Virus record (IMG/VR): IMGVR_UViG_3300042923_000474
Span: 62,001-126,000 of that record
Length of the DNA: 64,000 bases
Direction: 5' to 3' (one strand)
The stretch's first letter is position 1, and every line of letters starts with the position of its first letter. Shown piece after piece: positions 13,739 through 24,856 of the stretch. The notes beneath the pieces were generated by a model, which was given only the letters and a program-made list of their open reading frames with translations, ran no database searches and was not told the origin of the DNA. A program made the position numbers and the translations under genes.

Positions 13739-13791
13739 AGGGCCGCCTCTCGGCTGAAGAAGTATGTTATGGACGATGCATCGGCTATAAA

Positions 13792-13838: not shown

Positions 13839-16040
13839 ATGTCAATTGATCTCAACACCGTCAGTCTCCCCTTCGACCGTTGGGGCACAGCAGCTACCAA
13901 CAAGATCGTGGGGGAACGACAAACTCTCACCAGCGTCGCCTGGACAGAGTTCAATATCCTGATTCCGAAGTACGCTCCGTACTACTCGGAGAGTATCCCG
14001 AACGACGGCATTACTCACTTGCCAAGTGGGCGCAAGCTGGTTCGTGGTAAGGACTGGATCGAGGGCTGGTACTTCCAATCCGCTTCTGGCGAACTGGGCC
14101 TGGACCTGCACTGCTGCATTTATTTCTACGACCCAACCTTGGCGGGTGAAGTCGAGATCCCATCCTACCAAGCGATGGGTGGTGAATGGCAACTCAATGC
14201 GGCGTTGCTCACCAAGATCCTCGCAGAGAAACTGCTCAACCCACTGCGTTACTACTGGGAGCAGATTGCAGAGCTGCCAGAAATCTTCAACCCGCTGGAC
14301 CACGACCAAGACATCGAAGACTTTACTCGTCTCGGCAGCTTGATCGACGTCCTGCGTGAGATCGCTCAGGCGATCGGCAAAGATGACCCGGCTATCCTGG
14401 CTCACATTGCCAACAAGAACAACCCACACGGCACCAACAAAGGCCACGTGGGGCTGCCGCTGGTAGAGAACTGGCGTCCGGCTGATCTGAATGACTTGGT
14501 TGTCGGTAACTTGACGTACCAGGCGTACATGAACCCGCCGATGACGTACCAGTTGATCCAGCGTACGGCCATCCCTGCGATCAATGCGCACATTGCGCGG
14601 GTGGACAACCCTCACAATACCCGTGCAGACAAAACCGGTGCCTACTTCAGAGAAGAAGTTGATGCCCTGTTGGAATCGCTGGCTCGTGGTCTGATCCACA
14701 ACGTCTATGCTTATCGCCTTGAAGGTAAGAGCGTGGCCGACATTGTGGCACTGGCTCGTGGTGATGCCTCCGGCAGCCTGGACGAACTGCGCAACCTGAT
14801 CACCGGCGTTTCGAATGCGGCGAATGCTCACGCCCAACGTACTGACAATCCGCACAACACGCGGGCTGACAAGACGGGCGCCTACTTCACGACTGAAGTG
14901 GATGCGTTGCTCGATGCACTGGCTACAGGTAACCTGCACAACCTCTACGCCTACCGTTTGGAAGGCAAGAGCGTACAGGATATCATCAGTGCCTCCATCG
15001 CCGGTGTGGTTGACCGGATGGATGAGATCAAGCAGGACGTACTGGACACCCTGACCGCCACGCTGAACAACTACAAGGCTGTCGACACCACCAAGTTTGC
15101 CGGTAAAACGGAAGACCAGTGGGTGGACATCATTGATGGCAAAATCGTTGAGGCGGTGAACCATTGGAACATCTGGCCACCGGGCGACGTCATCGGTAGC
15201 GAGACTGAGGCAAGCGTTATCCTCATTGCGGAAATGTCCGACTCTGAAGATTCAGGCGGCACCGACGCCTCGCACCGTGGTAGCTTTGGCTTCCGTGTTC
15301 TGATGGGTGGTCCTAACACCACTTCTGCAACCAACTATGCCGACATCTTTGTATCGCAGAGTACGGGTCAGGCGTGGGGTATCGCCTCTGCTGCATTGCC
15401 AACCGGCGTCTCGTTCTTCTTGGAAAACAAGTTCGGTGACGATGGTTCGCTGTGGGATGGTACCAAGCGTCTGTACATGCGTGCTCCGGCAGGCTTTGGC
15501 GCTGTGGGCGTTACTGCGTTCTCCATGACCGGTATCACAGTTCCGGGCGAGCAGGACATCTGGAAGCAGTCGACGTGGAATGGTTTGGGTTCCCCTACCA
15601 ACACCGTCAACATCCAGCTGACCACCAACGGCACCAAGGAAATGACGGACGCCGTGGCTACCAACGTAGGTCTGCTGACTACAGCACTGACCAACTTGGG
15701 CACCACTGTCGGCACCCAAGGCGGCAAGATCCTCGCACTGGAGAACAGCAACAAAGTTCGCTATGCGCAGAGTCGTCAAATCCCAGCCGGTCTCAAGATC
15801 ACCATCGACCTGCAAACGTTGGTGACCGATCCTGCAGACTACGCCAAGTACGATTACCTGGGCGCTCGTGTCAACGTATTGCTCCTGGACGAGGTGGCCG
15901 AATCCAACTCCAAGGATTCGTACATTGAAGCCTCGACCACTGTGGTCAAAGCTCTCCGTGGCAACCGCTATCTGGATCTGTGGAACTACGATACGGTTCC
16001 GGTTACGGTCGCCGTGCGAATCGAGCTGCCATTGCTCTAA
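13839..16040 (+). CDS. Tail fibre protein, phiKZ gp145/146-like
   Basis: N-terminal attachment-type domain, NPH motifs, 80-aa tandem repeat, Gly/Ser/Thr-rich distal domain. Confidence 0.75.
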   Translation: MSIDLNTVSLPFDRWGTAATNKIVGERQTLTSVAWTEFNILIPKYAPYYSESIPNDGITHLPSGRKLVRGKDWIEGWYFQSASGELGLDLHCCIYFYDPTLAGEVEIPSYQAMGGEWQLNAALLTKILAEKLLNPLRYYWEQIAELPEIFNPLDHDQDIEDFTRLGSLIDVLREIAQAIGKDDPAILAHIANKNNPHGTNKGHVGLPLVENWRPADLNDLVVGNLTYQAYMNPPMTYQLIQRTAIPAINAHIARVDNPHNTRADKTGAYFREEVDALLESLARGLIHNVYAYRLEGKSVADIVALARGDASGSLDELRNLITGVSNAANAHAQRTDNPHNTRADKTGAYFTTEVDALLDALATGNLHNLYAYRLEGKSVQDIISASIAGVVDRMDEIKQDVLDTLTATLNNYKAVDTTKFAGKTEDQWVDIIDGKIVEAVNHWNIWPPGDVIGSETEASVILIAEMSDSEDSGGTDASHRGSFGFRVLMGGPNTTSATNYADIFVSQSTGQAWGIASAALPTGVSFFLENKFGDDGSLWDGTKRLYMRAPAGFGAVGVTAFSMTGITVPGEQDIWKQSTWNGLGSPTNTVNIQLTTNGTKEMTDAVATNVGLLTTALTNLGTTVGTQGGKILALENSNKVRYAQSRQIPAGLKITIDLQTLVTDPADYAKYDYLGARVNVLLLDEVAESNSKDSYIEASTTVVKALRGNRYLDLWNYDTVPVTVAVRIELPLL
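14583..14975 (+). repeat. Intragenic tandem repeat, 240-nt period
   Basis: DNPHNTRADKTGAYF..EVDALL..LA.G..HN.YAYRLEGKSV twice, starting 14583 and 14823. Confidence 0.9.
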
Positions 16041-16100
16041 ACCTTCATTGGGCGCCCCGCTCGTCGGGGCTAGTCCACGTTCGATTCAGGAGCATTCTTT

Positions 16101-17564
16101 ATGTCCCTTCGCCCGTTTAAGTTCGAGGTTGATAACACGGGTGTCAACCCGAACAACCTCGTACCGGCAGAGGCGCACACCCTACAAGCGTCGGGTAAGC
16201 GCTTCATCGTTACGGATCATGGCCCGTTCTATACGGACTCGTTGATCCTGATTGATCTGGCAACAGGTCAACAGTTGGCACCCCGTACACAGTTCACCGC
16301 TATCCAGCTGGAAGAAGATGCAACCGTTGAGTCCGGTAAGGAAGTCTGCTCGATTGTTATCATCGACGACCCCAAGGTCTCCAACCGTGTAGCGATCACT
16401 TACCAAGCCTACGGCGGCTGGATGTCCTATTCGGTTACGGCCATCATCGAGATGATCGAGAACCTGGACTTGGACAACCGAGTCATTCACTGGGCAGACA
16501 TTGTGGGCAAGCCGGATCGCTATCCGCCTGCTCCGCACCAACACCCATTGTCCGACGTTTATGGTTGGCACAAACTGTTCCCATCGCTTAATGCCATCCG
16601 TGAGGCTATCCTCGCCGGTGACCAGGCGGTGTTCGACCAGATCCGTGCATCGTTCGCTGCTGAGATTGCAAGGCTTGAGGCTAAGGATGCTGACATCCTG
16701 AACAAGCTGAACTCTCACATCAGTAACCTTGCCAACCCGCACAACGTTACCATCCATCAAATCGACGGTCTGTCCTCTAGCGAGATCTACGCGCTGTTGG
16801 CTCAGAAGCTCGGCAAGACGGAGACCGCGGTTAACTCGATGAAACTGGAAGGGCGTAGCTTCCTGCAAACTCGTGATGAGATTGTAGGCTCTATCCAGAA
16901 CCCAGAGCTGAGCCGTGGCCTGTTCAACAAGCCCAACTTGGGTGAGAACTGGAACACCAGCGATGCGTCGTTGCTGTTGACCCGCGATGGTTGGAAGAAC
17001 TTCAAGCAACACGAAACTCAGTTCGGTCGCAGCATTACTGAGCTGGGCGGCTACACCACGTCTGAAACAAACAACCTGCTCAACCAGCGTCTGCCTGTAG
17101 GCGGTACCGCCGTCAATGCCAACGCGTTGGAAGGCCGCTCGTTTGGTCAGACCCGTGCCGAGATCGTGGGCAGCATCCAGAACCCTGAACTGGTTCGTGG
17201 TTATTTCAACAAGAATAACCTCGGTGAAAACTGGAACCCTGTCAACAACAAGTTGGTCCTGACCGCAACTGGCTGGCGTGAGTTTGCCACCATGGCGGGT
17301 GAGAACGGCTTGGACGGCGGCTCTCTGATCTGGTCGGGTGGCATGCGTTGGGCTCAGGTGCAAGTGGCGTACGCTGACAACACCCGTTACAAGCCCGGCA
17401 CTGCTGTGATCTTCGTGTACACCAACTACAACGTTTGGGGTACCGGTAACGGTACGGCTTCGACCTCCGTTGACACCTACGGCATCATGGTCAAGATTGC
17501 CGCTGGTCAATGGATCTTGGTAGCAACCTCTGGCCCAGCCACTAACCAGGCCAACAATCTGTAA
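16101..17564 (+). CDS. Second tail fibre protein
   Basis: Related N-terminal domain, NPHNVT motif, 94-aa internal repeat. Confidence 0.75.
   Translation: MSLRPFKFEVDNTGVNPNNLVPAEAHTLQASGKRFIVTDHGPFYTDSLILIDLATGQQLAPRTQFTAIQLEEDATVESGKEVCSIVIIDDPKVSNRVAITYQAYGGWMSYSVTAIIEMIENLDLDNRVIHWADIVGKPDRYPPAPHQHPLSDVYGWHKLFPSLNAIREAILAGDQAVFDQIRASFAAEIARLEAKDADILNKLNSHISNLANPHNVTIHQIDGLSSSEIYALLAQKLGKTETAVNSMKLEGRSFLQTRDEIVGSIQNPELSRGLFNKPNLGENWNTSDASLLLTRDGWKNFKQHETQFGRSITELGGYTTSETNNLLNQRLPVGGTAVNANALEGRSFGQTRAEIVGSIQNPELVRGYFNKNNLGENWNPVNNKLVLTATGWREFATMAGENGLDGGSLIWSGGMRWAQVQVAYADNTRYKPGTAVIFVYTNYNVWGTGNGTASTSVDTYGIMVKIAAGQWILVATSGPATNQANNL
16824..17285 (+). repeat. Intragenic repeat, 282-nt period
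   Basis: TAVN...LEGRSF.QTR.EIVGSIQNPEL.RG.FNK.NLGENWN....L.LT..GW..F twice, starting 16824 and 17106. Confidence 0.9.
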
Positions 17565-17573
17565 GGAGGCGTC

Positions 17574-18146
17574 ATGAACATTGCTGCATTGTCTGGTGCC
17601 TTCGCGCAGGCGCCGAGTATTGTGGGGGGTACCGCCAAAGTTTGGTTGATCTTCAACCGAGCCAACGGCGTGTATTGGGGTTTCGCTCAGTACGATGAAG
17701 ACCATGCGTTTGATGAAGACTACTTCGTCTTGGTCGAAGCTGAGATGGATGCCACCTATGAAGGCGTGGTTGGGACTTATCCCGATTACAAGATCATGGC
17801 CAAGGCAGACATGCCTCAGGAAATCGACGAGGCCATGCTCAATGCAATGACCTCCGAGAACATCGAAACCCGCTACCCTGTGACCAAGCAGATCAATAAC
17901 CTGGCTGCCGTGGTTATGTTGTTGGCCAAAACCGCTGGTCTACAAGACAACGAGTTGGTCGTCGCGCTACAGGAACAGGTGGATGAAATCGCCGACATCC
18001 TGCGCAACAACTCTCTGCGTAAGCAGGGTTACGCGGGTAACGATGCGTTCAAGTTCGTCACCACCGACGACCGTGCACGTGCCGAGAACTCCAAGTACGA
18101 AGGTGGTCTGCATGAGCGAATGGGTCCAAGAACAGTTGTATCCTGA
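17574..18146 (+). CDS. Putative tail fibre assembly/accessory protein
   Basis: Follows the fibre gene; acidic; YPVTKQINNL helix; AAGGAGG RBS. Confidence 0.55.
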   Translation: MNIAALSGAFAQAPSIVGGTAKVWLIFNRANGVYWGFAQYDEDHAFDEDYFVLVEAEMDATYEGVVGTYPDYKIMAKADMPQEIDEAMLNAMTSENIETRYPVTKQINNLAAVVMLLAKTAGLQDNELVVALQEQVDEIADILRNNSLRKQGYAGNDAFKFVTTDDRARAENSKYEGGLHERMGPRTVVS

Positions 18147-18618
18147 CGTTCTTAGTCCTGTTGTCTGTACGGAAATGCTGGAGCGGTGTAAAGCCCTCCA
18201 GCCGTTCCACTGGGTCAAAGTCGATCGAGCCATGGGAAAGCAGGGGTATGCCGGGGCGTGGTCCCGGTATGCCTATGTTACGCAAGATTCCGTACCTAAG
18301 GAATTGGCCGACTGGATCTGGGCACAGGCACCTAAGAACCCGGCGTGGGAGTTGGGGCGGTTTGTTGTGAACCGCTATCGGGTCGGGGAATTCATTGGTC
18401 TACATAAGGACCGTGGCACCCACGATCTGAATTTAATCATCCCTCTGCAGACTGGTGAAGACGGCGTGTCCATCGAAGACGTGCTGTATCCCGATGTGGT
18501 GGGTAATGGGCGACTCCATATCTACAACGGCAAACCTCATTGCGTGCCCCCTGTTAAGACAGAGCGCTACGTGGTGATTTACCTGTACAAAGAGGTAGGT
18601 ATCCATGATCAAGGATAA
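18112..18618 (+). CDS. 2OG-Fe(II) dioxygenase (P4H/AlkB-type fold)
   Basis: VNRYRVGEFIGLHKD (HxD), distal H in PHCVPPV, 2OG-binding R in ERYVV. Confidence 0.85.
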   Translation: MSEWVQEQLYPDVLSPVVCTEMLERCKALQPFHWVKVDRAMGKQGYAGAWSRYAYVTQDSVPKELADWIWAQAPKNPAWELGRFVVNRYRVGEFIGLHKDRGTHDLNLIIPLQTGEDGVSIEDVLYPDVVGNGRLHIYNGKPHCVPPVKTERYVVIYLYKEVGIHDQG

Positions 18619-19270
18619 TTTGGGTCCAGACATCAAACGTCTGTCCCCGCTTACAGACGAGCAGCTTAAAGGCCTTATCGCCTACGCTGACTCGCACACG
18701 ATGTTCCCTGGCAACTTTCCACACATGGGCATCAATGGCCGCGACAATGTCTCGGTCTATCTGCAACACTCGATGTACAAGCAACCGATCCGTGACCGTA
18801 AGGCGCTGCGTGAATTCATGCCGAGCCTGCATGAGAAGGCGATCTTGGAATACTTCTTGGAGTATCCAGCCAAGCGTGGTCACCTTGACCTGCAGACGTA
18901 CTGGATCGGTAAGCGTCCGGCCATGCGCATTGCAGCCTGGTGCCTGTCTGAAGAGGCCACCTTCTACAACTGCCGCAACATTACCAACCCAGCTTTCTCC
19001 ATGGATGAAACCATTCCAGTGGGTGACGTGGTGGCCGATGCCGACCGCATTGAGTTGGTGACGCTGGAGAATGCTGAGTATTGGGCGAACCGTGATGACA
19101 TCATTCGTCAGAACGCGCCGACTGAACATGTCTTCAAGCAAGGCGAAGGTTTCGTTTTCAACTTGAACAACGCGCACGCCGTGCTCAAGCAATCCACCAC
19201 TCAACGCTGGTTCTGCTTGGGGCTGATGATGGCTCCCGACAGTGTCCACGCACCCAAGTCATGGATCTAA
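18605..19270 (+). CDS. Divergent 2OG-Fe(II) dioxygenase/cupin-like protein
   Basis: GHLD (HxD), FKQGEGFVFNLNNAHAV (distal H), QRWF; about 50-aa insertion relative to the flanking paralogues. Confidence 0.55.
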   Translation: MIKDNLGPDIKRLSPLTDEQLKGLIAYADSHTMFPGNFPHMGINGRDNVSVYLQHSMYKQPIRDRKALREFMPSLHEKAILEYFLEYPAKRGHLDLQTYWIGKRPAMRIAAWCLSEEATFYNCRNITNPAFSMDETIPVGDVVADADRIELVTLENAEYWANRDDIIRQNAPTEHVFKQGEGFVFNLNNAHAVLKQSTTQRWFCLGLMMAPDSVHAPKSWI

Positions 19271-19274
19271 ACAA

Positions 19275-19799
19275 ATGGACTTCGACAAGACATTGGGGTT
19301 TCAATCCATCCCAGGGTTGATCACTCCGGTACTGTGCGACTTGGTTAAGGAAGCCCTCGAACGGTTGCCTGCCCAATACTGGGCCCTGCGCGATGTACTG
19401 GCTCCCGGTCGTGGTTACCCAGGTGAGTCCTGCCGCTACCACTGGGCAGGGCCTAATACGCTCCCTAAAGAGCTTTACCGGTCTTTGCTGGACATTGCCC
19501 CTAAGCATCCAGAACTCGACCTGTACGAGGCCTGTGTGAACCGCTATGAGCCAGGAGACTACATCGGCAGACACCGTGATCGAGACGGCTGCATTCTCAA
19601 CGTCACAGTACCTCTGCAAGCGGATGGCGATGGCCTGCTCGTGGACGATGTGTTTTACCCCGATGTCATTGGCCAAGGCAATCTGTTATACAAGTCTGGT
19701 CCTGCCCATTCAGTGCCGCCTGCCAAGCGCAGTCGTTACGTTTTGATCTTCCTCTATACGGAGAAGCCCCATGATCACCGTTTCCCGCCTGGGCAATAG
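19275..19799 (+). CDS. 2OG-Fe(II) dioxygenase, paralogue of 18112-18618
   Basis: VNRYEPGDYIGRHRD, AHSVPPA, SRYVLIFLY. Confidence 0.85.
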   Translation: MDFDKTLGFQSIPGLITPVLCDLVKEALERLPAQYWALRDVLAPGRGYPGESCRYHWAGPNTLPKELYRSLLDIAPKHPELDLYEACVNRYEPGDYIGRHRDRDGCILNVTVPLQADGDGLLVDDVFYPDVIGQGNLLYKSGPAHSVPPAKRSRYVLIFLYTEKPHDHRFPPGQ

Positions 19800-20466
19800 C
19801 TGGGCATCTGCCACTGACCCCAAGACAGGTGAGTTGGTATTGATTCATTTGGATAGTCTGCGCCAAGAGGTGAGTGATCCCCTCGAATCGTCCGCTATCG
19901 TTTCGACCTTCAGCTTCTATCGTCGCCCTCAACCGGGTGAAGGTGAAGTGGTCAAGCCTACCGCCGATAACCTCAAGCAGGCCAAGCGCTTCCCTAACGA
20001 AGTGGTTCTGCTGATGGGAATGGCTGACGGCGAGAACCCTGCTCGTTTGTTCGATCAGGTGGTCTACGTGTTGTTTGCGGTGTTGTTCGAAACCCATCCT
20101 CCGATGACGTACGAAGAATATCAGCTGTACCTCAAGCAGACTCCGCGTTACGGTCGCAATTACCTGGCCCTGCCAAACCCATCGAGCCCTACTGGGCGCT
20201 TTGCGGTGTGGAACATCCTCTTCACTCGTACCTACGGCTTGAATGCCGAAGGCGTGTTCACCAAGCTCTCGGCGAAAGCCAAGTATCGCTTTGGTTACAT
20301 GGGCGGTGTGGAAGTGTTCCCAGGCACGATCTACAACTTCCCTCAAGGCTTCATGCTGGAGCGTAGCGTGGAAGGTCATGACTTTATTGAACTCATGGCT
20401 AACCTGCTGACTCTCGCCAGTCAGAGTGAAGACGTGGCCAAGGTTGAGCCGTACTGGGTCAAGTAA
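19771..20466 (+). CDS. Hypothetical protein (231 aa)
   Basis: Overlap-coupled to the dioxygenase, RBS GGAGAAG, last gene before a terminator. Confidence 0.7.
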   Translation: MITVSRLGNSWASATDPKTGELVLIHLDSLRQEVSDPLESSAIVSTFSFYRRPQPGEGEVVKPTADNLKQAKRFPNEVVLLMGMADGENPARLFDQVVYVLFAVLFETHPPMTYEEYQLYLKQTPRYGRNYLALPNPSSPTGRFAVWNILFTRTYGLNAEGVFTKLSAKAKYRFGYMGGVEVFPGTIYNFPQGFMLERSVEGHDFIELMANLLTLASQSEDVAKVEPYWVK

Positions 20467-20472
20467 TGCTGC

Positions 20473-20505
20473 CCCGCTCTCCCCACGGGGAGGGCGGGCG
20501 TATGC
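20473..20505 (+). terminator. Hairpin followed by TATGC
   Basis: CCCGCTCTCCC/GGGAGGGCGGG stem; TATGC 20501-20505; tandem junction. Confidence 0.7.
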
Positions 20506-20534
20506 TATGATTCTCAATCCACAGGAGCAGTCCA

Positions 20535-23500
20535 ATGGCCGCTTACAACGTCTGGTTCGATAAAGAACCTGGCCGCTATACCAGTCCCCAGACCATTGGC
20601 TGGACTGTGTCTGATCAGGTTGACTTCTTTGCCATCTCGCAAGGTGACCTCCCGGCTGCTATTTCCGAGTACATCGCTTACGACACCCTGACCCCACCGA
20701 ACCCTTTCATCGCGGTAACGCAGGACGGTACAGGTAACGTCGTTTATGATGGCGGCTTCCCCAAGTTCATGAATGCGTCAGCTCCACCGGCTGGGATCAA
20801 TGCTTCGATCACTATGGAGTTCCGGGCTACCTGTACGGGCGTAGCTGCTGGTGTCAATGCCTTCTACTACAACGCATTCACCGATCTGGCATGTCTGATT
20901 GCAGCGGGTGACAAGCTCGTGTACGACATGTGGCAGAACAACAGCCTTGCCCGAGCAGGTATTGACGGGGTTACCTCCCTGACCCCACCGGACCCACACT
21001 ACTCATTGCGAGATTGGGAAGGCGGATACATCGTTGACCAGAACGGACTGGCCTCCCATCCTGCAACAGATCTGGGTGGTCGAGCCACTAACCAGTGGTA
21101 TCACCGTGAGTTCGACCTGACTCGCTGTGCAGGCTTCACGTTCAATCGTTGGTCGATGGCCTTCGAAGGCGAGTCTGCGGGCGACTTTGCTTGCCGCTTC
21201 CGTGACGTCTATATCTTGGACAGCGCCGGTCGTATTAAGTACACGTTGTTTAAGGATTCCATGCGTCTGCCGGGGAATTCCTCAACTGAAGTAGGGGCGA
21301 GTGGCTACACCAATCTGGTCAAGCAGCTTTACGACCCACGGGCTCAGTTAGCAGGTTCCTACAAGTACCTGTTCAACGCCGTGCATTTTTGCTCCAACAC
21401 CAAGAAGAACGCGGCGGGTAACAAGAAGATTCTGATCTTGGGTGACCACACCAATGCATCTTCTACCTATGCGGTTAAGAGCACTGACCCTAGTGGCTTC
21501 TTTACCAGCATGACCAACCTGTGTGCGGCGCTCGGCTACACGCCAACGTTCAAGGACTTGGGTGATTATGGTGGCACCCAACTGAATCCAACACTGGCTG
21601 AGTTGGAGCAGTACAGTCTGGTGTTGATGTTCTCTACGGCCTACCACCAGCAGAACGCTCCACTGATTACTCCGGCAGCTGTGGATGCGTTTGTGGCGTA
21701 TCGTTCGGCGGGTAGCGGCATTATCCTGATCACCGACCATGGCAGTGCCGTGATTACCGACATCGCCCAAGTCAACCAACAGGTGGCTACATCGGCGGGC
21801 TTCTACGGTACCTGTAACCGGATTGCCACGCGTTTCGGTGCATGGTTCACTGGTAACTTTGACCGCTCTCCGGTTAACGTAGGTTTCCTGCGTTCGACGT
21901 ATGGCGAGCATCCTCTCTGGGCGGGGCTGGCCAACGATGAAAGTATCATTGCCGGGGGCTCTGAATCCAAGGTAATGATCAGTCCCTTCACCAAGTACAC
22001 CAAGACCTCCCTGCCTCCGGCGATCTCACTGCAGACGCCGCAGCGTAAAGTGGTTCAGGTAACGGCCAAGCTGAAGAACGGTGAGGCTGAAACCTTCCGA
22101 GTGGTGTTCATCTACGGTGACGGTTCGCTGATTAAGTGGACGGCTGACGGCAGCACCGAAGTGACCAGCGTCGACATCAAGTGGGCATGGACCATGTTCC
22201 TCGATCTGAAGTTCGACACGGCAGGATTAGGTACGCTGACAGGTTCCATTTACAAGAACACCACCAAGATCGGCGAGATCCTTTCGTCCGACGACGGCGA
22301 TGTTAAGGTAACCTGGTATTCGGGTGCCGTCTCCAACCACACCTTCTTGAATGGGGATGTGTTGCGGGCGGCTCTGGAAAACCCAATCAGTGCTTCTGCC
22401 AGTGTGGCGATCAGTCGCTGGAACTTGGAACAACTCAAGGGGCGTTCCAAAGCAGAGATTGCTCAGCTGATCAGTCACAAGTACGGGGCTGACACCGTAG
22501 CGGGTCCAGAAGCCAAGTTCCCACAGCGAGCCATTCGTGCTGCGGGGCGTGGTGTTCGTTCCATCTTGCCGAAGGATGCCATCATTGATGGTTACGGTAA
22601 GGTGCTGGACTGGGTGAGTGCAGGTCAGATCATCCGCATGCTCAAGGAGTTCGCCAAGGGTAACTTCCCACGGGTTCCGCTGAACGTTCTACTGTACGAG
22701 GACCAAGCGAAAGCCAACGTGGCCATGGCCAACTTCACCCCACCCACGCCTAAGCAGATCTTCGACACATGGGGTCGCTTCTCGAATCAGGAATGGTACG
22801 AGCCTGGGGTTGTTCCGCCTGCTGGTTCTGAGGCGGCTGGCTGGTCGTGGGATGCAGCTTCCAACAGTGCCAAGTCCACGGTCAACTCTGCGAGCACGAT
22901 TGGTTTTGTGTCCAAAGAGAAGGTAGAGGAATACATCCACGATGTGACCTTCACCTCCAGCAATGCTGACGACGATTCCATCTGCGTGGTGATTGCTGCT
23001 GCGAAGACGGGTAATCTGGTTGAGCACTTGACGTTGGTGGCAAGCCCTGGTGGTTACGGCACTGCACCGATCATGTTGGTGTACAACCTCGCTACAACGG
23101 GTGCCAAAACACTGGTAGAGCGTAACGTCATTGCGTTCGGTACACCTAACAGTGGGCTGACGCCATGGAGCGGTCGATCCATCCGGGTTAACATCAACCG
23201 TCGTGGGTCAAGCGTTACCATCGGCTACACGAACTGGAACGACCCATTGGGCCCGATCGTGGATACCTTCACGTTCGACATGACCAGCGAACCTTTACTG
23301 CACAACCTCTTGGGGCCACAGCAGTACGGCTACGGTGCCATGTCTCAACCTGATGTGACGTTCAAGAACATCCAGTTCTATGGCGGGGTGATGCTGCAGA
23401 CACTGACCGTAGCTTCGACGGGTGCGGTGTATCGTTGGAACGGTTCGGCTTGGGCTCCGGTAAACGGGGTTAAGTTGAAGGATGTGTACGGGACGCAGCG

Positions 23501-24014
23501 TAAGTTGATCTCGTACCTGACAACGCAAGAGTTCTACATCGACAAGAATGGGGTGGTGACTAAACTGACCGACCCTGCTCCCATGTTGTTGTCCCCTCTG
23601 GTGAACTCCGCCTTCAAGAACCCTGTAACCAATGCGGTGTTGTCGCCACAGTACAAGGTTTACTCGGCCAGCTACGGGTGGCAATCTCTGCCGGCTAACC
23701 TGACGATGTATTACTACGCGGACATGTACTTCCCAGCGGGAGACTACTGGTTCATCGGTGCTGCGGATGATCAGTTGACTGTCGAGATTGATGGGGTGGT
23801 GTATGGAAATCTGGGTGGTGGTTATGTAGAAGGAGCCGCTGTTCAGAAATTCAAAGTCACACTCACTGCAGGTACACACAAGTTGAAACTGACTAACGTG
23901 AACGTCCCTGCTGGTACGCCTGGGTATTGGTACATGTTGATCCTCAACAGTGCAGGTGCCATATTCCACGAGCCTACTCCGGGCACTTGGAAAACACTCG
24001 ACGCAATCGGGTAA
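20535..24014 (+). CDS. Large modular virion/tail-associated protein (1159 aa) with lectin-like and PA14-like domains
   Basis: Gly/Ser/Thr/aromatic-rich; beta-sandwich-like segment SSNADDDSICVV; C-terminal FIGAADDQLTVEIDG...GTHKLKL PA14-like pattern. Confidence 0.6.
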   Translation: MAAYNVWFDKEPGRYTSPQTIGWTVSDQVDFFAISQGDLPAAISEYIAYDTLTPPNPFIAVTQDGTGNVVYDGGFPKFMNASAPPAGINASITMEFRATCTGVAAGVNAFYYNAFTDLACLIAAGDKLVYDMWQNNSLARAGIDGVTSLTPPDPHYSLRDWEGGYIVDQNGLASHPATDLGGRATNQWYHREFDLTRCAGFTFNRWSMAFEGESAGDFACRFRDVYILDSAGRIKYTLFKDSMRLPGNSSTEVGASGYTNLVKQLYDPRAQLAGSYKYLFNAVHFCSNTKKNAAGNKKILILGDHTNASSTYAVKSTDPSGFFTSMTNLCAALGYTPTFKDLGDYGGTQLNPTLAELEQYSLVLMFSTAYHQQNAPLITPAAVDAFVAYRSAGSGIILITDHGSAVITDIAQVNQQVATSAGFYGTCNRIATRFGAWFTGNFDRSPVNVGFLRSTYGEHPLWAGLANDESIIAGGSESKVMISPFTKYTKTSLPPAISLQTPQRKVVQVTAKLKNGEAETFRVVFIYGDGSLIKWTADGSTEVTSVDIKWAWTMFLDLKFDTAGLGTLTGSIYKNTTKIGEILSSDDGDVKVTWYSGAVSNHTFLNGDVLRAALENPISASASVAISRWNLEQLKGRSKAEIAQLISHKYGADTVAGPEAKFPQRAIRAAGRGVRSILPKDAIIDGYGKVLDWVSAGQIIRMLKEFAKGNFPRVPLNVLLYEDQAKANVAMANFTPPTPKQIFDTWGRFSNQEWYEPGVVPPAGSEAAGWSWDAASNSAKSTVNSASTIGFVSKEKVEEYIHDVTFTSSNADDDSICVVIAAAKTGNLVEHLTLVASPGGYGTAPIMLVYNLATTGAKTLVERNVIAFGTPNSGLTPWSGRSIRVNINRRGSSVTIGYTNWNDPLGPIVDTFTFDMTSEPLLHNLLGPQQYGYGAMSQPDVTFKNIQFYGGVMLQTLTVASTGAVYRWNGSAWAPVNGVKLKDVYGTQRKLISYLTTQEFYIDKNGVVTKLTDPAPMLLSPLVNSAFKNPVTNAVLSPQYKVYSASYGWQSLPANLTMYYYADMYFPAGDYWFIGAADDQLTVEIDGVVYGNLGGGYVEGAAVQKFKVTLTAGTHKLKLTNVNVPAGTPGYWYMLILNSAGAIFHEPTPGTWKTLDAIG

Positions 24015-24016
24015 CA

Positions 24017-24063
24017 GCATAGACCCCCTGCCCGCAATGGGCAGGGGGCTTGTGCCTTTATGC
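24017..24063. terminator. Bidirectional hairpin terminator
   Basis: CCCCCTGCCC-GCAAT-GGGCAGGGGG; GCATA 24017-24021, TGTGC 24051-24055 and TATGC 24059-24063. Confidence 0.75.
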
Positions 24064-24798
24064 TGCTTCCAGAACGTTGCCTGGTTTCAAGCCTTCGGCC
24101 ATCATGGCTTTCAGTTTGACCAGACATTCACCGCGAGTGATCGCGCCGTCTTTGTTCACGTCCAGACCCGAGTTCTGACGGTAGGTGGTAGGACGGCTGT
24201 TCTGATCCCAGAGGATGTAGTCGTCCGACTGACCCACGCCACGCGGCCAGAGAATAGCCATGTACAGGTCACCCAGGTTCTTCAACTTGCCAGTGTACGG
24301 CATGAAGTATTTGAGCACGTAATCCAGCTGCTCCTCTGCCGACATCTTGGCCAGTTTGGCACAGGCTTCGATACCCGCTGCTTTCTTCTGGGCATCAGAC
24401 ATCTTGGCGATGGCCGCTGGCGTGTTGAAGTAGGCAATCGCGGTAGCCGGCATGAACTGAATCAAACCAGTAGCGCCAGAGCCTGCCTTGTTCACTACGG
24501 AAGCCGAGAAGGTACGACCCGACTCCCACGCGATACAGGTCATGAGATCGGACAGGCCAGCAGGTGGCATGTTCAATGCGGCGACAATGTTACGGGCCTT
24601 GTCGAGGAAGGGTTTGGAAACCTTCGCACCCCATGCAATTTGCATTGGTTTAGTTCCTGTTTGAGTTTGTTGAACAATCCCGATTGCCCGATCAAAGGCG
24701 CCTTGGGACCCACTACCCCACAGCCCGTCAATGTCGCCCGTATAAAGGCCAACAGTCGCCAGACCACGTTGCAATTCTTTGAATGTTTCTTTAGACAT
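24058..24798 (-). CDS. Modular endolysin: peptidoglycan-binding domain plus lytic transglycosylase/lysozyme-like domain
   Basis: ELQRGL..VGLYTGDIDGLWG binding motif; CIAWESG (catalytic Glu), GATGLIQFMP, LYMAILWP; GAAGGAG RBS. Confidence 0.9.
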   Translation of the reverse strand: MSKETFKELQRGLATVGLYTGDIDGLWGSGSQGAFDRAIGIVQQTQTGTKPMQIAWGAKVSKPFLDKARNIVAALNMPPAGLSDLMTCIAWESGRTFSASVVNKAGSGATGLIQFMPATAIAYFNTPAAIAKMSDAQKKAAGIEACAKLAKMSAEEQLDYVLKYFMPYTGKLKNLGDLYMAILWPRGVGQSDDYILWDQNSRPTTYRQNSGLDVNKDGAITRGECLVKLKAMMAEGLKPGNVLEAA

Positions 24799-24856
24799 GT
24801 AAGTCTCCTTCACCAGTCACAGAATAGCCCTAGCTATAAGAAACTAGGAGCAAACC

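Follow-up and report, generated by a model that had tools for sequence, protein, structure and literature searches.

Oxygenase-like genes and a degenerate paralogue form a cassette beside tail-fibre genes in phiKZ-like and T4-like phages

Why would a phage carry oxygenase-like genes immediately downstream of those for its tail fibres? These fibres determine the range of bacteria that it can attack, and phiKZ-like phages serve both as model systems and as candidates for phage therapy. We addressed the question in IMG/VR virus record IMGVR_UViG_3300042923_000474, a complete 231,724-bp record with direct terminal repeats, of which bases 62001-126000 were analyzed (64,000 nt, hereafter "the window"). 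A sequence-only reading of the window had described three 2-oxoglutarate (2OG)-Fe(II) dioxygenase-like genes, here named A, B and C, coupled to a tail-fibre operon. The explanation that we tentatively favor is a fibre-linked accessory cassette, in which a protein hydroxylase (A, duplicated as C) would work with non-catalytic partners. The genes, read with genetic code table 11 only, form a run of seven on the plus strand, followed by the gene for a 1159-residue virion protein:

fib1, 13839-16040, plus strand: 733 amino acids, tail-fibre protein with a phiKZ gp131-type N-terminal attachment domain
fib2, 16101-17564, plus strand: 487 amino acids, tail-fibre paralogue, like phiKZ gp133-135
gp136-like, 17574-18146, plus strand: 190 amino acids, first gene of the cassette
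A, 18112-18618, plus strand: 168 amino acids, gp137-like, prolyl-hydroxylase-like 2OG-Fe(II) oxygenase with intact catalytic residues
B, 18605-19270, plus strand: 221 amino acids, gp138-like, divergent paralogue of A with an insertion of ~60 residues
C, 19275-19799, plus strand: 174 amino acids, second gp137-like oxygenase copy with intact catalytic residues
D, 19771-20466, plus strand: 231 amino acids, orphan and last gene of the unit

Genes A and C encode apparently competent oxygenases

The proteins encoded by A and C are 40% identical (E = 1e-39), as anticipated when the outer two genes were called paralogues, and the genome holds exactly two copies of this type. Word-based homologue searches with single proteins gave just 2 and 5 relatives, and profiles and viral-contig scans were needed to define the family. 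The A-family profile search retrieved 119 relatives of 100-186 residues, 71 of which were aligned. At an overall identity of 26-40%, residues H98, D100, H143 and R152 are invariant in all 71 sequences, and C keeps HRD...H...R. Both A and C have the double-stranded beta-helix (jelly-roll) fold. The AlphaFold2 model of A (predicted local distance difference test score 90.4) retrieved the PBCV-1 collagen prolyl hydroxylase as the top-ranked Foldseek match, and its listed structural matches are all oxygenases except for one cupin domain. Among solved structures, those of protein prolyl hydroxylases come closest; ALKBH6 is less than one Z unit away, so the fold ranking alone is not decisive. We regard A and C as minimal Fe(II)/2OG oxygenases, apparently competent and nearest to protein prolyl hydroxylases.

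The known enzymes nearest to A and C are probably the prolyl 4-hydroxylase (P4H) and prolyl hydroxylase domain (PHD) enzymes of PF13640, including Pseudomonas putida PPHD (4j25, 4iw3), human PHD2 and the PBCV-1 enzyme (5c5t). In comparison with these, A and C are only 13-21% identical, are shorter (168-174 amino acids) and stand beside a degenerate paralogue in a tail-fibre operon. EGLN3-like 2OG-Fe(II) oxygenases with conserved iron ligands and an unexplained function are widespread in marine phages and belong to PHROG 61 (PMC12774648). A and C are also PHD-like phage proteins, but fall into PHROG 2297 rather than 61.

This latter family (phrog_2297) is labelled "DNA endonuclease," as are gp137 homologues in RefSeq (e.g., PHIKZ137 in NC_004629). 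No nuclease domain or motif was found in the A/C family, for which Pfam and NCBIfam give only oxygenase-type matches, and every test indicated a 2OG-Fe(II) oxygenase rather than a nuclease. Thus, RefSeq has probably mislabelled the gp137 homologues of dozens of Pseudomonas phage genomes.

In a maximum-likelihood tree of the A family, A and C of the window sit on long branches in a clade with homologues from T4-like contigs, outside the clade of phiKZ, PhiPA3 and 201phi2-1; the tree leaves the sister relation of A and C unsettled. A second oxygenase copy was seen only in a near relative (contig L002). In contig L018, the gene that follows the B-like gene is unrelated to the A family.

Gene B is a divergent paralogue that is probably not an enzyme

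The B protein has no BLAST similarity to A and no Pfam match, and an exhaustive profile search among 1.8 billion representative proteins found only 47 relatives. Profile-profile comparison nevertheless linked the B and A families (probability 90%, E = 1.7e-6, 138 columns), with the Asp and the distal His aligned, and B also has the double-stranded beta-helix fold. The insertion that had been noticed in the middle gene is real: relative to most homologues, which have ~160 residues, B carries ~60 extra residues (roughly 123-180) that few others share.

Taken alone, B reads H93-L-D95...H191...R201. Across its family, D95 and H191 are each present in 45 of 46 sequences, whereas position 93 is Phe in 34, His in five and Arg in three. 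The column aligned to the Arg of A is Gln in 34/46, and the neighboring R201 occurs in only six. Codon 93 (18881-18883) is CAC (His) here and TTC (Phe) in the 84%-identical protein of L002. The complete iron triad of B would thus belong to the strain and not to the family, and is most simply explained by a substitution at a freely varying position. Because the family mostly lacks the first iron-binding His and the 2OG-binding Arg, we consider B to be a divergent paralogue that is probably not an enzyme. The description of three HxD...H...R genes holds in full for A and C; for B it applies to this strain but not to the family. A complex prediction for A with B scored 0.00, which is evidence neither for nor against binding.

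The cassette accompanies tail-fibre genes in distant phage lineages

In the phiKZ record, the fibre paralogues gp131 and gp133-135 are followed by gp136, gp137 ("DNA endonuclease") and gp138, which are direct homologues of the gp136-like gene, A and B, in the same order. The phiKZ cassette occupies positions 141,381-142,913. In contrast to phiKZ, the window phage has only two fibre paralogues, two gp137-like copies and the extra orphan D, and B differs from phiKZ gp138 in its insertion and in having His at the lost ligand position. Using tblastn and open reading frame (ORF) maps, we examined phiKZ, the phiKZ-like loci among contigs L001-L009 and L015, and the T4-like or unclassified contigs L003, L010, L013, L014 and L018. 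The order of fibres, gp136-like, gp137-like and gp138-like genes was found in every phiKZ-like locus. Homologues of gp136 and gp137 occur in 72 phage records, all of them from Pseudomonas phages (phiKZ-like jumbo phages), and homologues of gp138 in 55.

The cassette adjoins fibre genes in all of the loci examined, and the fibre families differ in the T4-like and unclassified contigs. There it lies inside tail-fibre clusters (L013:6493-7982; L014:6511-7942; L003:7460-8958; L010:7421-8869; L018:4960-6636). Contigs L013 and L014 carry T4 gp13 and gp15 domains and fibres with Collar domains, and their cassette (phrog_13209, an A-family oxygenase and phrog_14616) is flanked by large proteins that match many tail-fibre PHROGs. 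The same cassette stands amid still other fibre families in L003 and L010. The coupling to tail-fibre genes that had been proposed from the window is strongly supported by phiKZ, by every phiKZ-like locus examined and by T4-like contigs with other fibre families.

The gp136-like protein and the orphan D

The gp136-like protein is 35% identical to phiKZ gp136 and has a single PHROG match, to the unknown-function family phrog_13209 (E = 2.8e-33); it has no match in Pfam or NCBIfam. Its leads to tail-assembly families in the ESM Atlas, XkdW (0.84) and Phage_tail_APC (template modelling score 0.30), are below meaningful levels. The sequence-only reading had called this gene chaperone-like, for which these matches offer no confirmation; possibly, the protein is an assembly factor. 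The family has a C-terminal EGGLHExxGPR motif (18100-18143 in the window, residues ~176-190), with GG and E conserved in all 12 aligned sequences and GPR in 10 of them. This motif could be a recognition or modification site for the adjoining hydroxylase. The gp136-like and oxygenase genes share 26-50 nt, at the 3′ end of the former and the start of the latter, in each of the five loci for which gene coordinates were available, phiKZ among them (18112-18146 in the window; L001:8513-8562; L013:7001-7050; L014:7001-7026; L015:7001-7047). The conservation of this overlap suggests translational coupling of the two genes. By eye, the overlap contains no slippery site.

No match for D was found in Pfam, PHROGs, NCBIfam or the phage records, and the ESM Atlas gave no usable match. 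Its sole relative in the viral-contig scan is on the closely related contig L002 (ratio of nonsynonymous to synonymous substitution rates, dN/dS, 0.097), and its codon-usage score is good.

Gene layout and selection

The earlier description of the fibre and cassette genes as tightly packed was accurate. From fib1 to D, the junctions are, in order, gaps of 60 and 9 nt, overlaps of 35 and 14 nt, a gap of 4 nt and an overlap of 29 nt, and a gap of 68 nt separates D from the gene for the 1159-residue protein. Shine-Dalgarno-like sequences precede most of the gene starts. Relative to L002 (83-92% protein identity), dN/dS is 0.09-0.15 for all eight genes, indicating that they are real genes, all under purifying selection. 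The region from fib2 through D (16101-20540) is collinear and free of indels in contigs from four other studies, and the stretch is present in public runs of soil, wastewater, leaf litter and plant material. None of these runs is recorded as RNA; three have a guessed RNA label, and the one of them that was among the four runs compared is tagged as probably DNA. A megablast search of the 10-kb region against phage records gave zero matches. The GC content is 54%.

Opposite the fibre and cassette genes, the minus strand has long ORFs of 231-507 residues (13842-15164, 16182-17705, 18554-19249 and 19666-20535). A self-trained codon-usage model ranks the plus strand genes above these overlapping ORFs, which look like by-products of codon bias.

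Transcription signals around the unit

The unit had been described as closed by one terminator. A strong, GC-rich, terminator-like hairpin does follow D on the plus strand (20473-20500), and the fold of 20455-20540 (86 nt) has −39.6 kcal/mol (z = −3.1). However, this hairpin has no U-tract and is missed by the consensus scan, and it is not the only one, as a weaker hairpin lies between fib1 and fib2 (~16053-16072). Directly 3′ of the strong hairpin is GTATGCTATG (20500-20509). The pattern GTATGYTATG occurs exactly twice in the window, at 13762-13771 (76 nt upstream of fib1) and at 20500-20509, in both cases upstream of structural genes. Across the genome, the regions upstream of genes are 6- to 10-fold enriched in TTATG and TTTATGC, which often follow directly on GC-rich hairpins. 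The TATG-type motif probably serves as a promoter motif of the phage itself, in combination with terminators; the late promoters of phiKZ presumably have a TATG core as well. Two TATGCC sites within gene A (18246 and 18267) stem from Tyr-Ala codons. A sigma-70 promoter scan gave fewer matches than in shuffled sequence, which is not surprising when a phage has polymerases of its own.

Judging from these signals, the cassette is probably part of one transcription unit with the fibres, from the motif at ~13762 to the hairpin at 20473-20500. Its position and the TATG-type motif suggest that it is expressed late.

Published functional data from phiKZ

A transposon library of phiKZ, in which the genome average is one insertion per 42 bp, recorded 577 reads at 2 sites in PHIKZ137 and zero in PHIKZ133-136, 138 and 139 (Table S2, bioRxiv 10.1101/2025.11.23.690004). 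In the unfiltered Table S3 of the same study, 137 has 604 reads at 8 sites, 136 has 4 reads and 138 has 1 read; the authors caution that insertions may have polar effects. Insertions in gp137 are tolerated, and phiKZ thus does not need the intact enzyme in order to form plaques on PAO1. The insertion-free state of gp136 and gp138 suggests a role in fitness, and the overall pattern fits an accessory enzyme that works with required non-catalytic partners. In the literature searched we found no mention of phiKZ gp137.

The phiKZ record tags gp131-135, but not gp136-138, as structural. Modification of the receptor, the other target that the sequence-only reading had offered beside the fibres, finds no support: we found no evidence of gp136-138 in the virion, and action at adsorption is unlikely.

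Favored and alternative explanations for the cassette

If the cassette is a fibre-linked accessory hydroxylase system, A and C would coordinate Fe(II) with His-x-Asp...His and hold 2OG with the conserved Arg, and would hydroxylate a protein linked to fibre assembly in the host cytoplasm. A fibre subunit and the gp136-like partner are the likeliest candidates for the substrate. Adaptor or assembly roles without catalysis would fall to B and probably also to the gp136-like protein. Three observations speak for a protein substrate: the closest folds belong to enzymes that hydroxylate proteins, the association with fibre genes persists from one lineage to another, and A and C fall short of the AlkB model. 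The analysis itself shows the gene structure, the paralogy, the fold, the conserved residues, the cross-lineage linkage to fibre genes and the purifying selection; from these we infer enzyme activity, a protein substrate, the timing of expression and the non-catalytic role of B.

Several points weigh against this explanation. Enzyme activity and fibre hydroxylation are both putative, and neither protein reaches a Pfam gathering cutoff. A scores 18.0 bits with PF13532 (cutoff 31.2) and 14.5 bits with PF13640 (cutoff 27), and C is likewise below threshold (15.8 and 13.7 bits, respectively). Since gp137 is dispensable, any tailoring is also dispensable for phiKZ plaques in the laboratory, and gp136 and gp138 could lack insertions because these would have polar effects on gp139, an essential gene further downstream. 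The link to fibre type is also incomplete. The gp131-type fibre domain is found in 241 phage records from many genera, compared to 72 for gp136/gp137, and Burkholderia phage FLC9, which has the closest homologue of fib2 (45%, N-terminal domain), lacks the cassette. The FLC9 locus (L012:7046-11496, gp69-gp72) has the same neighboring genes, including a divergent 422-residue neighbor. Two unrelated genes of 168-169 residues replace the cassette, and the fibre has a different C-terminus (by eye, a coiled, chaperone-like tail). We conclude that the cassette is an accessory of some fibres and not a requirement of the fibre type.

An unlikely but credible alternative is that the whole cassette is a non-catalytic set for fibre assembly or chaperoning, with the oxygenase fold as a binding scaffold only. 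In the B family the catalytic residues are lost and yet the gene is still under purifying selection; phiKZ gp136 and gp138 are free of insertions while gp137 is dispensable; and the FLC9 homologue of fib2 combines a different C-terminus with the absence of the cassette. Moreover, trans-acting fibre chaperones of T4-like phages occupy the gene position of the cassette. However, the preservation of His, Asp, His and Arg in 71/71 A/C-family sequences of such low identity is hard to explain without catalysis, and no member of the cassette matched a chaperone family in Pfam, PHROGs, NCBIfam or the ESM Atlas. It is also conceivable, although decidedly unlikely, that A and C hydroxylate a host protein or a non-structural phage protein and that their place in the fibre operon sets only the late timing. 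A Pseudomonas prolyl hydroxylase that acts on EF-Tu is an example of such a target. On the other hand, P4H is only ~15% identical, PHD2 has an equally good score, and it would be unexpected for a host-directed enzyme to stay beside fibre genes in distant lineages with differing fibre families and genome layouts. We give little credence to a non-protein substrate (a sugar, lipid or small molecule of fibre or receptor chemistry), with which the Foldseek matches to the small-molecule 2OG oxygenases HalB, PasI, PolD, AviO1 and PiuC would agree, as would the 168-residue minimal domain, which, judged by its length, has no obvious peptide-binding extensions.

It appears very improbable that A and C demethylate or repair nucleic acids in the manner of AlkB, or that they are the "DNA endonuclease" of the RefSeq name. 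The AlkB family shares the NxY..G....HxD strand and the overall fold with A and C. Weak matches to PF13532 (E = 0.0035) and the TIGR00568 AlkB model (E = 0.0012) both cover the NRY..G....HxD segment, and the best PDB sequence match is ALKBH8 (E = 7e-4). Yet the score with the TIGR00568 equivalog is 18.8 bits against a cutoff of 231, and the match is limited to residues 49-111, with no more than the shared metal-binding strand. The conserved Arg is followed by RYVLIYLY, so the second Arg of the AlkB motif R-x5-R is absent, and the proteins are probably too short to hold a nucleotide-recognition lid. At E values up to 0.01, more members of the A family match PF13640 (P4H-type, 48/71) than PF13532 (27/71). 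The absence of a nuclease domain and the fibre-cluster context also fit poorly with this possibility. The earlier preference for protein modification over DNA repair is supported by the missed AlkB model and the prolyl-hydroxylase folds, with the correction that only two of the three genes look catalytically competent.

A more far-reaching version of the fibre-linked hydroxylase explanation, which we offer as speculation and consider on balance unlikely, is that gp136/137/138-type cassettes constitute a horizontally mobile fibre maturation system. The enzyme, guided by its dead paralogue and an adaptor, would hydroxylate the fibres, and the duplication would serve two fibre subunits. We know of no earlier case of post-translational modification of a tailed-phage virion by a 2OG oxygenase. 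Mimivirus L230, a collagen lysyl hydroxylase/glycosyltransferase associated with the virion fibrils, offers a viral parallel, as a 2OG oxygenase for which modification of the virus's own surface fibre proteins has been proposed or shown. The analogy is functional; L230 comes from a eukaryotic giant virus, has another domain architecture and acts on a collagen-like substrate, whereas the fibres of the window lack collagen repeats.

In the literature searched we found no mention of a cassette with gp136- and gp138-like partners and linkage to fibres. What appears to be new here is the family identity of the oxygenases (now mislabelled), their constant association with a degenerate paralogue and a gp136-like gene, the linkage to tail fibres in distant myovirus lineages, and the lineage-specific duplication. 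If the cassette finishes or assembles fibres, it would add a step to fibre maturation that is relevant to fibre engineering and swapping. The intact enzyme with its degenerate copy is a testable example of a phage pseudoenzyme partner. As gp137 insertion mutants of phiKZ were recovered in a pooled library, first experiments are within reach.

Fibre genes and neighbors

The fib1 protein matches phrog_2163 and phrog_13857 and has 29% identity to phiKZ gp131 over 360 amino acids (tblastn). The fib2 protein matches phrog_2163 (E = 1.3e-74) and is 33% identical to phiKZ gp135; fib1 and fib2 share an N-terminal domain (E = 1e-9). Cryo-electron microscopy assigned gp131 and gp133-135 to the twelve baseplate fibres of phiKZ (PMC13250141). 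In both phiKZ-like and T4-like contexts, the fibre gene immediately 5′ of the cassette closes with a 'YP.GT ... GNG ... W' domain of similar appearance (17200-17561 in the window; L003:7087-7446; L013:6114-6473). Comparison of these C-terminal domains with hhalign gave a probability of 28% (E = 6e-4), too weak to claim kinship across lineages.

Downstream of the hairpin, the 1159-residue virion protein (20535-24014, plus strand) has matches in phrog_11065, a family annotated as virion structural protein (E = 5e-130), as well as in tail-fibre PHROGs. Its L002 counterpart is 83% identical, and the gene has the highest synonymous substitution rate (dS) of the cluster. Beyond it, a 251-residue ORF on the minus strand (24058-24813) has, by eye, the look of an endolysin similar to phiKZ gp144, with a repeat that would bind peptidoglycan.

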